In this document: piece by piece, positions 21,135-23,276 of the stretch
Layout: every line of letters starts with the position of its first letter
Position numbering within the stretch: the stretch's first letter is position 1
Source of the DNA: Ylistrum balloti
Taxonomy: Eukaryota
Direction of reading: 5' to 3'
Assembly (NCBI RefSeq): GCF_031769215.1
Contig: NW_026782226.1
Span: 248,001-312,000 of the forward strand
Length of the DNA stretch: 64,000 nt
The notes under the pieces: model-generated
What the model saw: only the letters and a program-made list of their open reading frames with translations
The model's database searches: none
What the model was told of the DNA's origin: nothing
Made by a program: the position numbers and the translations under genes

Positions 21135-23276
21135 CTACTTGGCACATGACTTTGAGTTATGGTCTGCACCATGACAGTTTGAACATTTCCTACTTTCTTT
21201 TGTTCTTTTCCCTTTTCCCTCGAGAAATAAGAGCCGATTTTGTTTCTCTAATACTTGCTTCAATGCAGGTAATCCTCTATGACATGATCCCCTAAAAAAC
21301 TGCTTTGTTATATTATCATTGAGTTTTTCTAGTCCTTGTTGGCTAAATCTTACCATGGTTCCATGAGTTCTAATGATCTCTCCCACATGATATCTCAACA
21401 AGTGTATGTATGGGGTAATATCTCTTGTTTGATACACCTGTATATAAAGAGCACACCAGCTTTTTGCCTTCGCTTCAATCTCATCAGGGTCTGGATTTTC
21501 AGATTTTATTAACTCATTTATGTCTTTAAAGCCATCCCATAATTCCTGAATCTCTGCTGCTCTGTCCTTATCCTCAAACAAATCTGATGCATGAAAATGG
21601 TCAAACAAAACACGCTTCTCTGGACCTGTAAGGTCTCTGTAGTCCAATTTCTTTGTTTCTTGATTTACACCTATCTCAAAATGTATTCCAAGTTGCTGTA
21701 GCACATTTTCTAATTTCAAAACATGCTTCAGTTTGTCTTTCTTCTCGTACACACTTGTAAATGTGGAGTTCTCATTTATGTTATCTAAGCATCTTAAGTC
21801 AGAAAGGAGAAGATTGAACAATTTGTCAGATATTCTCAAATACATATGCAAATGGTCTATAACAACACGATTTGGAGTAATGCTTGGAAAAAGTGGCTTA
21901 TTCTTCACAGAAAAAAAACCCTTGTTGACCTTCTTTCTCTTTAGTGATGAAGATTGTACCAATTCCTCACACTTATACTCAAGTCTAGCTCCTTTGGATG
22001 GATCAACCATAGACCAATTTCTACTGAGGTCTAGTTTTTCAGCCTTGTTACATGTGCAGTAAATGCAAAAATGCTGACAAGCTACTGAAGATATTCCAGT
22101 AGCAAGCAGAAGAAATTTATAATCCCCGCCTAAAACTATTTCAATATCAAAACTTCTATGTTGTACTTTTAGACTATTGCCATCTAGTTCCTCAACTTCC
22201 TTAACCAAATCTGATAAACCCAATACTAGATCACTATATTTTTCTGCAGTTCGTATGACAGCCAAAGGGTAGTTTCCCCGGACTGATGCACTCCTTTCTT
22301 CATTTACAATAGTAAAAGTAACATTAACAACATGAATCCTTTTCCCTATATTTGTACCATCCCCTGATATTTTAATTTTTACCTTACCTGCAGGGGCAAA
22401 GTTCTTGTCAGTTTTAATCTTATGTGAAAGTACGTCATGTAAATGTTTTTTCAAACTCTGCTGAACACCAAGTCCATCTGGAGTTTGGATGATATCAAAT
22501 TTTGAATTTAAATCTGAAAGAACTTTATTAACAGCGTTAATTCTTGGGAGGGTTTTAAATGCCATACTCAACTCATGATATGCATCTTTACTGATGTTAA
22601 ATGTATCTAAAATGTAAATCAGAGCATTCAAATCATCTAAAGTTTCACTTGCCTCCAGTGACTGGTTTTCCTTATTTTCACCAGTTTCATACAATCTAAG
22701 CACCTCCTCTTTTCCATTCCTGACCACTGTGACAGATACAGGCACAGCATCTGAATCTTTTAAAAATGACAGTGCTTTTTTACAATGTTCTTCATCTTTT
22801 TTCCTAATTTTGGACTGCCAACTAGGTGTGCAATCAGCAAATGCTTTCCGCTTTATAGGTTTCACTTCAGGAGTACCAATTACTGCACTTAAATTACATA
22901 ACTTTTCCCTCAACTCTTTGTTTTCTTTTTCTTTATCCCTTAGATCTTTTTCAGTATCAGCCTTTATTTTATCAACTAAAAACTGAGTTTCTTCTCTATC
23001 AACTTTGACGTCCCAACTATATTTGGAATGTTTTAATTGTTCTTTAAACTTTCTAAATTGTGACCCACCCTTCACTTTTGCTTGTAAACCATTTTGTTTA
23101 AGCCTAAAAAGTTCAGCACGTAAACATTTCAAACTATGTTCATCTGGGAGAAATTTCAATGTACAGATGCTTTCAATAGCTGTTGATATTTCTTTAACAG
23201 TTGGTATATTTAATGGTTTATTCCAATAGTTTTTCAATAGTATATTAAAAAGTTCTTCTCTAGAAATGATGATCAT
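21135..23276 (-). CDS. Intact RAG1/Transib-superfamily DDE transposase, 713 aa, single exon
   Basis: Motifs in RAG1-core order: basic NBD-like KRKAFADCTPSWQSKIRKK; DDBD-like ILDTFNISKDAYHEL..LPRINAVNK; D306 (ISGDGT); D385 (LGGDYKFL) followed by C404-x2-C407; NKPLF..VIDHLH; TPYIH625LLRYH630; FSQQGLE650KLN; C-terminal C698-x2-C-x4-H-x4-C711. These parallel the RAG1 motifs SCDG / GYDEK..CTLC / SIDALH / NYFHKTLAH / SEGNESGNK, recalled from knowledge rather than from a search. Confidence 0.88.
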   Translation of the reverse strand: MIIISREELFNILLKNYWNKPLNIPTVKEISTAIESICTLKFLPDEHSLKCLRAELFRLKQNGLQAKVKGGSQFRKFKEQLKHSKYSWDVKVDREETQFLVDKIKADTEKDLRDKEKENKELREKLCNLSAVIGTPEVKPIKRKAFADCTPSWQSKIRKKDEEHCKKALSFLKDSDAVPVSVTVVRNGKEEVLRLYETGENKENQSLEASETLDDLNALIYILDTFNISKDAYHELSMAFKTLPRINAVNKVLSDLNSKFDIIQTPDGLGVQQSLKKHLHDVLSHKIKTDKNFAPAGKVKIKISGDGTNIGKRIHVVNVTFTIVNEERSASVRGNYPLAVIRTAEKYSDLVLGLSDLVKEVEELDGNSLKVQHRSFDIEIVLGGDYKFLLLATGISSVACQHFCIYCTCNKAEKLDLSRNWSMVDPSKGARLEYKCEELVQSSSLKRKKVNKGFFSVKNKPLFPSITPNRVVIDHLHMYLRISDKLFNLLLSDLRCLDNINENSTFTSVYEKKDKLKHVLKLENVLQQLGIHFEIGVNQETKKLDYRDLTGPEKRVLFDHFHASDLFEDKDRAAEIQELWDGFKDINELIKSENPDPDEIEAKAKSWCALYIQVYQTRDITPYIHLLRYHVGEIIRTHGTMVRFSQQGLEKLNDNITKQFFRGSCHRGLPALKQVLEKQNRLLFLEGKGKRTKESRKCSNCHGADHNSKSCAK

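Follow-up and report, generated by a model that had tools for sequence, protein, structure and literature searches.

A probable autonomous two-gene transposon of the RAG1/Transib superfamily, lacking target-site duplications, in the scallop Ylistrum balloti

The window analyzed here is a stretch of 64,000 nucleotides from the scallop Ylistrum balloti. At 21135-23276 it carries the 2142-bp open reading frame that a sequence-only reading had described as uninterrupted. The frame is indeed free of stops, though it runs on the minus strand, and the plus-strand frame over the same interval contains many stops. The frame encodes a transposase and lies within a larger element that also contains a second gene, here called the partner, and terminal inverted repeats (TIRs). 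The features are as follows, in window coordinates and from the 5′ to the 3′ end of the element.

20188..25638, minus strand: whole element, probably autonomous, 5,451 bp, reading 5′-CATATCAAG...TTGATATG-3′ in its own orientation; boundaries exact in about 10 insertions
25614..25638, minus strand: 5′ TIR, CATATCAAGATTATTTTGTAGTGAC, with 17/25 matches to the other end
25632-25638, minus strand: terminal heptamer CATATCA of the 5′ end, common to the Mizuhopecten and Argopecten elements
25594..25608, minus strand: 5′ subterminal 15-mer, GAGTTAACTCCCCTG, element positions 31-45, conserved at scallop ends
24790..25015, minus strand: partner gene exon 1, from M1 to the first base of G76, encoding the first chromo-barrel-like strands and ending ...GYVKVHFTG
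23811..24789, minus strand: predicted partner gene intron, 979 nt, GT...AG, with an (AAG)n-like tract inside
23299..23810, minus strand: partner gene exon 2, WSAKYD...DDPLL and stop, encoding the remainder of the chromo-barrel together with a conserved ~150-aa C-terminal domain
21135..23276, minus strand: transposase ORF, 713 aa and stop, uninterrupted from ATG to stop, 2142 bp
22359-22361, 22122-22124 and 21327-21329, minus strand: transposase catalytic codons D306, D385 and E650, respectively
21144..21185, minus strand: C-terminal CCHC knuckle, CSNCHGADHNSKSC, transposase residues 698-711, the counterpart of the RAG1L CTT* motif Cx2Cx3GHx4C
20213..20227, minus strand: 3′ subterminal 15-mer, AAATTATCTCCCTTG inward from the end, with 3 mismatches to the consensus
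20188..20212, minus strand: 3′ TIR, CATATCAATATATAGTTGTAGTCGG inward from the end, at the boundary shared by the copies

The transposase residues named in the sequence-only reading are all present, and D306, D385, C404, C407, the D474/H477 pair of the DxLH motif, H625, H630 and E650 are invariant across all full-length homologs. A profile of 15 homologs aligned D385 with RAG1 D708, C404/C407 with C727/C730, H625/H630 with H937/H942 and E650 with E962, a residue-level equivalence for D385, E650 and the zinc ligands. D306 is assigned as the putative counterpart of RAG1 D600 by its place on beta-1 of the predicted RNase-H fold, where it is the sole invariant acidic residue and where D600 sits in RAG1; a sub-alignment around D306 gave no match to RAG1, and this assignment is one of position rather than of residue-level alignment. 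The family profile matched RAG1 structures (E 2e-7) and BbRAG1L (E 0.013) and did not match HzTransib, while single-sequence Pfam and PDB searches with the transposase returned nothing, the family profile and the fold being the only sources of matches. An AF2 model of the transposase (pLDDT 83.7) was compared with known structures using Foldseek, and RAG1 (9e-14), BbRAG1L (9e-11) or HzTransib (2.5e-9) accounted for 49/49 of the best 49 matches, the next family being the P element at 5e-3. Residues 207-694 of the model aligned with residues 458-1008 of mouse RAG1 in VIA-align (Z 27, rmsd 3.6 Å, 450 residues), and the model also aligned with BbRAG1L (Z 24.5, reaching residue 713) and HzTransib (Z 23.7). 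The RAG1-like core, from DDBD through CTD, thus spans residues ~207-694, and its RNase-H-fold core, inserted ZnC2/ZnH2 module and CTD superimpose on RAG1/Transib. Membership in the RAG1/Transib superfamily, as had been proposed, is supported by profile-sequence search, Foldseek and structural alignment alike.

Outside the core, residues 1-206 are predicted to be helical, contain no Cys/His clusters and had no Pfam match, and the RING/ZDD and Cys-rich motifs of RAG1L are absent from them. The C-terminal tail follows the CTT* motif defined for RAG1L as Cx2Cx3GHx4C (PMC7204232), which is exact in six homologs (P0002, P0007, P0010, P0011, P0012 and P0013), reads Cx2CxGxDHx4C in the window copy, with D in place of the RAG1L G, and is missing from one subfamily (P0003, P0004 and P0006). 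All named transposase homologs are annotated as “uncharacterized protein,” and a word search based on the alignments found no named RAG1L or Transib relative among them.

The element is present at about 10 independent sites in the Y. balloti genome at 98-100% identity (99.0-99.8% over about 5.45 kb). These insertions have common boundaries and flanks unrelated to one another, and about 10 independent 5′ ends and about 10 independent 3′ ends were recovered. Around the window copy, the flanking sequence occurs once in the assembly, in contrast to the repeated element. The transposase has 78 protein matches in the genome, including six intact copies at 97-100% amino acid identity, one with a 19-aa in-frame deletion; the further matches form diverged and decayed subfamilies with many decayed copies carrying stops. 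Both genes are intact in six element copies. Mizuhopecten insertions also occur at unrelated loci, and contigs from other individuals connect element ends to additional flanks. No empty allele of the window's own insertion was found in the assembly, no read among the short DNA contigs from other individuals spanned an empty site, and none of the RNA runs searched contains the element. We conclude that window positions 20188-25638 are probably one copy of an autonomous, recently active, two-gene RAG1/Transib cut-and-paste transposon. Of the two possibilities raised in the sequence-only reading, a recent insertion with cryptic ends is the correct one, the ORF belonging to an element with near-identical insertions at unrelated sites and defined TIRs.

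Neither a CAC-type TIR pair nor a 5-bp target-site duplication (TSD) had been seen by eye, and both absences held; the element does have real ends, at positions 20188 and 25638, but their sequence is not of this type. The TIRs are imperfect and start with 5′-CATATCA, and a conserved 15-mer lies about 25-40 nt further in. This 15-mer was found at 7/7 true ends from three scallop species, where 0.02 occurrences per 80 nt would be expected by chance. Terminal heptamers in four families read CATATCA, CATACTG and CATCACA/CATAACA, having only the CA step in common with the CAC type, and no CAC-type, RSS-heptamer-like TIR start was present at the ends of these families. CAT...ATG termini without a flanking repeat occur in Y. 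balloti, in a subfamily at 44% identity, in Mizuhopecten (2 copies), in an ENA-sample family (3) and in Argopecten, and a TSD of any length was found in 0/16 insertions from the four related families. The 794-aa family (L059/L060) has ambiguous ends and was left out of the end counts. Within Y. balloti, the ends are exact to the base in 8/10 cases at the 5′ side and 9/9 at the 3′ side, with the first 9 nt of the 5′ end altered in two copies (C413 and C763), and no obvious target motif was found at the insertion sites. At the one site where a direct empty-site check was made, the empty paralogous site C112 reads TTTATGTCT|TTCTGTAACAG and the filled site reads TTTATGTCT[element]TTCTGTAACAG, so that exactly the element segment is absent, with zero duplication and no target bases lost or gained. 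A TSD of ATAT (target C|ATAT|G) was considered and ruled out because ATAT is absent from the empty site, and 1-bp and 5-bp TSDs outside the ends were ruled out by eye in all copies. A missing TSD is unexpected for a RAG1-fold DDE enzyme. Strand, true ends, the lack of a TSD as a family trait and the conserved partner gene had all escaped the sequence-only reading.

The partner gene, which precedes the transposase gene on its strand, is predicted to encode a 245-aa protein from two exons, with 22 nt separating its stop from the transposase ATG. Its spliced translation is identical to the NCBI model P0016. The conserved segment of exon 1 recurs in subfamilies L012 and L020, the two conserved partner segments lie merely ~90 bp apart in L012, and the exon 2 product retains 31-42% amino acid identity in diverged subfamilies; the partner family as a whole forms 113 clusters at 50% identity. 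The AF2 model (pLDDT above 90) comprises a small barrel and an alpha/beta domain with no propeller, and Pfam found no kelch domain in the partner. A profile of the family matched structures of MBT and chromo-barrel domains (E from 6e-11 to 1e-6), with L3MBTL3 at 6e-11, ARID4A at 9e-8 and MRG701 at 1e-7, and EAF3, MRG15, MOF and MSL3 also among the matches. Pfam matches were weak and limited to 15/43 members, with P0016 alone falling below threshold (E 0.005), and structural matches to chromodomains covered residues 52-96 (Z 4-5). Family profile and structural matches both identify a Royal-family barrel with the signature ...HYxGW..YDEW..., which reads HYxGWxxKYDEW in relatives and VHFTGWSAKYDTII in the window copy, where, judging from these residues, the aromatic cage may be partly altered. 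When the entire partner model was searched with Foldseek, VIA-wide and Atlas, the C-terminal domain had no convincing match. We infer that the partner consists of a Royal-family (chromo-barrel/MBT-like) domain followed by a conserved C-terminal domain, with methyl-lysine binding as its predicted activity and a function that is likewise a prediction.

Each family examined has a partner homolog (23-46% identity) along with its transposase, and the two genes are adjacent in Mizuhopecten, Argopecten and three non-scallop families. The arrangement is tandem with the partner upstream in scallops and convergent in the non-scallop families, and in families with 33-39% transposase identity the partner is on the other side and on the other strand. 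The named members of the partner family that were checked come from scallops, are close to it in length and bear the sole annotation “uncharacterized”; those whose surroundings were examined adjoin a transposase. These results show that the partner gene is co-inherited across families with 33-52% transposase identity.

The other possibility raised in the sequence-only reading was a domesticated recombinase-like gene. The ORF would in that case be a host-serving RAG1-like recombinase that has lost its transposon ends. Such a history would fit an intact ORF and catalytic core without CAC ends or a TSD, and NCBI annotates family members as plain “uncharacterized protein” genes. A domesticated gene would be single copy, at a conserved locus and without ends, whereas this one exists in about 10 near-identical copies at unrelated loci, with exact boundaries and intact TIRs in common; the unique flanks around the repeated window copy, the unrelated Mizuhopecten loci and the many decayed copies with stops likewise argue against domestication. 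With several copies, no conserved locus and intact TIRs, we consider the insertion not to be a domesticated gene, an explanation that is scarcely credible here. The upstream gene could instead be a passenger with no role in transposition, either a captured host chromodomain-like gene or an unrelated neighbor. Capture of host fragments by DNA transposons does occur, the partner possesses an intron and a start codon of its own, and its physical interaction with the transposase is conjectural; a complex prediction with the transposase core (207-713) and the partner (45-245) used no alignments, and its score of 0.00 speaks for neither reading. Against this stand the intact partner in 6/6 full-length copies, the examined named relatives that adjoin a transposase, and the presence of partner homologs in every family examined, even at 33-39% transposase identity. 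Retention of the partner across diverged families, on the other side and strand, points to long co-evolution rather than recent capture, and a passenger is quite improbable.

The missing TSD raises a further alternative, in which the RAG1-like transposase excises the element with blunt ends and host end-joining, not strand transfer, places it into chromosomal breaks. The signal ends produced by RAG are blunt, and NHEJ normally joins them. This route would account for the missing TSD in all 16 insertions, it agrees with the lack of an obvious target motif, and the altered 5′ tip in 2/10 copies is not expected from precise strand transfer. The exactness of the remaining 5′ ends and of all nine 3′ ends argues the other way, the single empty site without target loss or gain is cleaner than typical end-joining capture, and the spread of several subfamilies over time suggests an efficient dedicated mechanism, so that we regard end-joining as fairly unlikely. 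It has also been considered that the lineage is an already catalogued clade, such as Chapaev/Chapaev3 or “subgroup I” Transib, with its ends and second gene recorded in Repbase. The Transib superfamily comprises four clades, two of them known mainly from Repbase Reports (Kapitonov and Koonin, PMC4411706), and the CTT1 tail is common to subgroup I Transibs (PMC9435367). The defining feature of Chapaev elements is a Chapa zinc-finger domain at the N-terminus (PMC4411706), whereas the N-terminal 206 residues of the scallop transposase are predicted to be helical without Cys/His clusters and lack this finger, a separation from Chapaev/Chapaev3 that is drawn on the described N-terminal domain only. 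Every named homolog is merely an “uncharacterized protein,” and the papers searched, with Repbase outside the search, tie no Transib or RAGL element to a chromodomain-like partner or to the absence of a TSD. Prior cataloguing is unlikely, slightly more so than end-joining.

Among described systems, vertebrate RAG1-RAG2 has the same catalytic core fold and residues as the scallop transposase and is conceptually alike in pairing a catalytic subunit with an accessory protein that has a histone-reader-type domain, the PHD finger of RAG2 being such a domain. RAG2 (kelch and PHD) is unrelated to the scallop partner, and the mobile, multicopy scallop element differs from RAG, which is domesticated, present as a single-copy locus and active on RSSs. 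RAGL elements (amphioxus ProtoRAG, BbRAG1L-RAG2L, and the protostome RAGL of oysters and nemerteans) share with the scallop element a RAG1-like core with DDE and ZnC2/ZnH2, a CTT* tail and a two-gene layout, convergent as in our non-scallop families and unlike the tandem upstream partner of the scallop elements. They differ in having a RAG2-like six-bladed kelch partner rather than a chromo-barrel-like partner of ~240 aa, a RING/ZDD and Cys-rich N-terminus rather than none, and CAC ends with a 5-bp TSD rather than CAT ends with zero TSD; the RAGL elements described so far have invariant CAC ends and an invariable 5-bp TSD (PMC7204232). Canonical Transib (Helicoverpa zea HzTransib) and subgroup I resemble the scallop transposase in fold and protein size, and the CTT1-type tail of subgroup I is as in the scallop family (PMC9435367), but described Transibs are single genes with CAC-type heptamers and 5-bp TSDs, in contrast to the partner gene, CAT termini and absent TSD seen here. 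TSD length in Transibs can be 5, 3 or 2 bp, and the first TIR base can vary with the core kept (Ilin and Mannervik 2026 preprint); the Nozomi/Hayabusa/Oriex Transib lineage of Diptera still makes a TSD and has one gene, unlike the scallop element. Outside the superfamily there are the Spy elements, which are of a different superfamily from the scallop element. Spy elements have a strict insertion site, whereas no target motif is evident for the scallop element. These PIF/Harbinger-related elements (PMC4122938) offer a precedent for eukaryotic DDE cut-and-paste insertion without a TSD.

Taken together, we tentatively suggest, as a possibility short of an even chance, an undescribed RAG1/Transib branch in which a RAG1L-like catalytic subunit with a CTT* tail has co-evolved with a non-RAG2 chromatin-reader-type partner, recognizes bipartite heptamer-spacer-15-mer ends beginning with CAT, and integrates without a staggered cut. 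Within the main reading of an autonomous transposon, the core and CCHC tail of the transposase would contact the heptamer, and another transposase module, probably the N-terminal region, would bind the 15-mer. Excision would use the nick-hairpin chemistry of RAG1/Transib, after which the blunt ends would be inserted without stagger, or the excised element would be inserted by host end-joining. The partner would act as an accessory subunit, tethering the transposase to chromatin or licensing it there, a role that by analogy would resemble that of RAG2 with its PHD finger, although the protein is unrelated to RAG2.

To our knowledge, each known relative of RAG1 is either a single-gene Transib or a RAG1L-RAG2L pair; all of them have CAC ends, and 5-bp duplications are made by nearly all. 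Set against reference clades compared by description, the scallop elements appear to form a new lineage within the RAG1/Transib superfamily, one whose partner is not RAG2. The origin of RAG1-RAG2 from a transposon is a long-standing question, and here an apparently active lineage has kept the RAG1 core and RAG1L tail while its partner and terminal bases differ and it makes no duplication. Comparison would be useful for asking what purpose the accessory subunit serves, which protein features underlie the CAC requirement, and what sets the spacing of the two strand-transfer events. At least two scallop genomes contain several copies in which neither gene is damaged, so these questions can be tested directly with cloned natural copies. 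If the proposal of an undescribed branch is true, RAG1-type enzymes gained chromatin-reading partners on more than one occasion, or had such a partner before RAG2, and neither the 5-bp stagger nor the CAC rule would be an inherent property of the RAG1 fold.

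The sequence-only reading had reported an uninterrupted 2,142-bp frame at 21135-23276 encoding a RAG1/Transib transposase. The frame is real, an ATG-to-stop ORF of 713 codons, but it lies on the minus strand, and the plus-strand frame there is closed by crowded stops. Apart from it, the window has one long ORF (13063-13896, minus strand, 277 aa), whose weak coiled-coil-type Pfam matches are all below threshold and assign it to no family. Used as a single query, the transposase matched nothing in Pfam or among PDB sequences. A word-index search yielded 14 relatives; those with names are all scallop 'uncharacterized proteins' (Argopecten, Pecten, Mizuhopecten and Ylistrum) at 40-52% identity, and the remainder come from other assemblies. 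The resulting 15-sequence profile matched RAG1 structures (E 2e-7) and amphioxus RAG1L (E 0.013), aligning LGGD385 with RAG1 D708, C404/C407 with C727/C730, H625/H630 with H937/H942 and E650 with E962. When an AlphaFold2 model built from the same alignment (mean pLDDT 83.7) was searched with Foldseek, the top 49 matches were RAG1 (9e-14), BbRAG1L (9e-11) and HzTransib (2.5e-9), followed by the P element transposase as the next family (5e-3). VIA-align placed model residues 207-694 on mouse RAG1 458-1008 (Z 27, rmsd 3.6 Å, 450 residues); the BbRAG1L match (Z 24.5) ran to model residue 713, and HzTransib gave Z 23.7. D306, D385, C404, C407, D474/H477, H625, H630 and E650 are invariant across all full-length homologs. 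The proposed catalytic and zinc-ligand residues are thus borne out by alignment to RAG1 except for D306. On beta-1 of the RNase-H fold predicted by the model, D306 is the one acidic residue that is invariant, and this position, rather than residue-by-residue alignment, would make it the first catalytic Asp. Fold and active site support placing the transposase in the RAG1/Transib superfamily.

The last 16 residues of the transposase form a CCHC knuckle, and in six relatives it is exactly Cx2Cx3GHx4C, the motif by which the CTT* tail of invertebrate RAG1L is defined (PMC7204232); Tao et al. named the same tail CTT1 and found it in RAG1L and 'subgroup I' Transibs (PMC9435367). One scallop subfamily (proteins P0003, P0004 and P0006 from Argopecten, Ylistrum and Pecten) has a basic C-terminal tail, ...HKRKKRVYKDRKQ, and lacks the knuckle, unlike the remainder of the family. 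Residues 1-206 are helical in the model, are devoid of Cys/His clusters and had no match to anything searched, so the protein has no RING/ZDD and no Chapa domain (PMC4411706).

Searching the 648-Mb assembly with the transposase protein returned 78 matching places, six of them intact copies at 97-100% identity and the others subfamilies at 38-86% (most 42-60%), some intact and many with stops. Alignment of the six copies with their flanks delimited a common unit of ~5.45 kb, 99.0-99.8% identical, outside which the sequences are unrelated; partner gene and transposase are both intact in all six. Searches with the two element ends found 11 and 10 places, or ~10 independent insertions when three contigs with common flanks are counted once, and in short-read contigs from other individuals the ends are joined to additional flanks. 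Near-identical intact copies sharing one unit between unrelated flanks are the signature of a recently active element and not of a domesticated gene, so of the two alternatives originally offered, "active or domesticated", the former is favored. One of the six, the otherwise near-identical L006 (C729:116692-118773), lacks 19 aa of the transposase through an in-frame deletion and has a longer NCBI partner model of 263 aa. The lineage has at least five more subfamilies in this genome, with transposase identities of 42-59% (loci L008-L020, including C941:981441-983594, C100:85762-87927, C463:155666-157756 and C336:540423-542144); some keep frames of 721-741 aa open and have partner genes of their own, indicating that the lineage diversified within this scallop. 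The flanks at window 19901-20187 and 25639-25900 had zero depth in contigs of all four public runs holding the element; polymorphism of the insertion or its locus, or filtering of the records, may account for this, and such a hole proves nothing by itself.

Features of the element on the window
25638 to 20188, minus strand: element in its own orientation, starting 5'-CATATCAAGATTATTTTGTAGTGAC ... and ending ...ACTACAACTATATATTGATATG-3'
24789 to 23811, minus strand: partner gene intron, GT...AG; the spliced translation equals P0016 exactly

The two tips agree at 17 of 25 positions. The TIRs of the Mizuhopecten element (6,256 bp, two loci) match at 24/25, CATATCAGATCAAAxTTGACTGTAA, and the end pattern of the Argopecten copy agrees with that of Y. 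balloti. Three copies of a 44%-identity Y. balloti subfamily, each flanked by unrelated sequence, all end ...CACAGTATG, and a 33%-identity family in an ENA assembly (4,724 bp, three loci) has ends CATCACAGGAAAT.../CATAACAAGAAAT.... The ends are bipartite, since a second conserved block, GAGTTAWCKCCCCTG, lies ~25-40 nt inward of each tip; it was present at 7/7 true ends tested with at most three mismatches (0.02 expected per 80 nt). At the 5' ends on contigs C413 and C763 the first 9 nt read AATTTCAAG and GATATGGCG versus the usual CATATCAAG, with the remainder ~99% identical, which could reflect terminal damage, imprecise joining or local conversion. In a 794-aa transposase family from ENA assemblies (L059:331-5927 and L060:5040-10636), whose ends are ambiguous from two copies, the distances of a common GGACATTT block from the two ends are ~21 nt and ~30 nt, a hint that the spacing is asymmetric.

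No flanking direct repeat of 1-8 bp was present at any Y. balloti copy checked, and no TSD was found in the 44%-identity subfamily, the Mizuhopecten element or the 33%-identity family; the Argopecten copy conforms to this. The earlier failure to see CAC-type TIRs or a 5-bp TSD by eye was therefore correct, the true ends being CATATC...GATATG. The copy in contigs C825, C695 and C1262 sits in repeated DNA with a paralog on C112, where the insertion's 5' flank stops at 19001 and the 3' flank begins at 19000. A gapped pattern search showed this empty site to be exactly TTTATGTCT|TTCTGTAACAG with nothing between, so the inserted segment is CATATC...GATATG with zero duplication; the same site ruled out the alternative of a CATATG target with ATAT as its TSD. 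On its 3' side the C825 copy is flanked by sequence (34499-34898) belonging to another repeat family with ~8 other places, including C374, C786, C631, C535, C1164 and C112; in most of these, similarity begins within 1-4 nt of where the element inserted, so insertion may have been at or beside the end of another repeat.

Directly upstream of the transposase is a 172-aa ORF (23299-23817, minus strand) that shares 31-42% identity with its counterparts in subfamilies whose transposases are 44-59% identical, and a second ORF of 100 aa, located further upstream, is likewise conserved in its C-terminal half. In the NCBI model P0016 (245 aa, four identical accessions) the two form one gene, with the splice junction inside the signature ...GYVKVHFTG|WSAKYD..., which reads HYVG...GWHRKYDEE, LGWPHKYDEW or VGYSHKFDEW in other subfamilies. 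The intron contains an (AAG)n-like purine tract (24186-24218), probably a common microsatellite present at other loci too; its bin has several-fold higher summed depth in other individuals' contigs, and loose ends enter AAG repeats. P0016 alone gave weak evidence: a Pfam MSL3_chromo-like match at E 0.005, below threshold, and Atlas features scoring 0.76. An exhaustive search gave 113 partner-family clusters, mostly proteins of 200-250 aa. A 43-sequence profile matched L3MBTL3 MBT repeats (6e-11), ARID4A, MRG701, EAF3, MRG15, MOF and MSL3, and 15 of the 43 members matched MSL3_chromo-like. In the partner model (pLDDT 85.5), a small barrel at residues 52-96 superimposes on chromodomains (Z 4-5); for residues 97-245, which are modeled at pLDDT >90, whole-model searches turned up no convincing structural relative.

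Between the partner stop and the transposase ATG are 22-250 nt in those Y. balloti subfamilies that were examined, and Mizuhopecten and Argopecten have a spliced ~240-aa gene at the same place. In the ENA family L055-L057, in L058 and in L059/L060, the partner homolog is instead downstream on the opposite strand, a convergent layout like that of RAG1L-RAG2L pairs; the L055 homolog (229 aa, reading KVKYVGYGREHDEWL) is 26% identical over 190 aa (pairwise E 4e-7). That the two genes have been inherited together over such divergence, and in two layouts, argues that the partner plays a working role in the element.

RAG1/Transib excision proceeds by nick-hairpin chemistry, and the transposase core would act in the same way, the CA step at the tip being retained. 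An insertion that duplicates nothing calls for one of two routes: strand transfer at phosphates directly opposite each other, or host end-joining that captures the blunt element after its excision. Ends that are exact in 8/10 and 9/9 cases, together with the untouched target, favor the strand-transfer route; two copies whose 5' tips are altered leave room for capture. The CCHC tail and core would recognize the heptamer region, which CTT* reads in BbRAG1L (PMC7204232), and the GAGTTAWCKCCCCTG 15-mer would be read by another module, probably the N-terminal helical region. We hypothesize that the partner could be an accessory subunit linking the transposase to chromatin. RAG2 carries a PHD finger and offers a proposed functional parallel, although the partner protein is unrelated to RAG2.

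RAGL elements described so far all start CAC and make 5-bp TSDs (PMC7204232). The scallop element has neither of these features of classical RAG1/Transib elements; it also lacks the RAG2L partner and Cys-rich N-terminus of RAGL, while sharing the RAG1L tail. A 2026 preprint (Ilin and Mannervik) describes Transibs that make 3-bp and TA duplications and whose first base is not C, and Spy elements (PMC4122938) provide a precedent for DDE transposons without TSD. Among the published papers searched, none described a RAG1/Transib-type element that has a chromodomain-like partner or lacks a TSD. The element is of clear interest for RAG evolution and for the mechanism of transposition.
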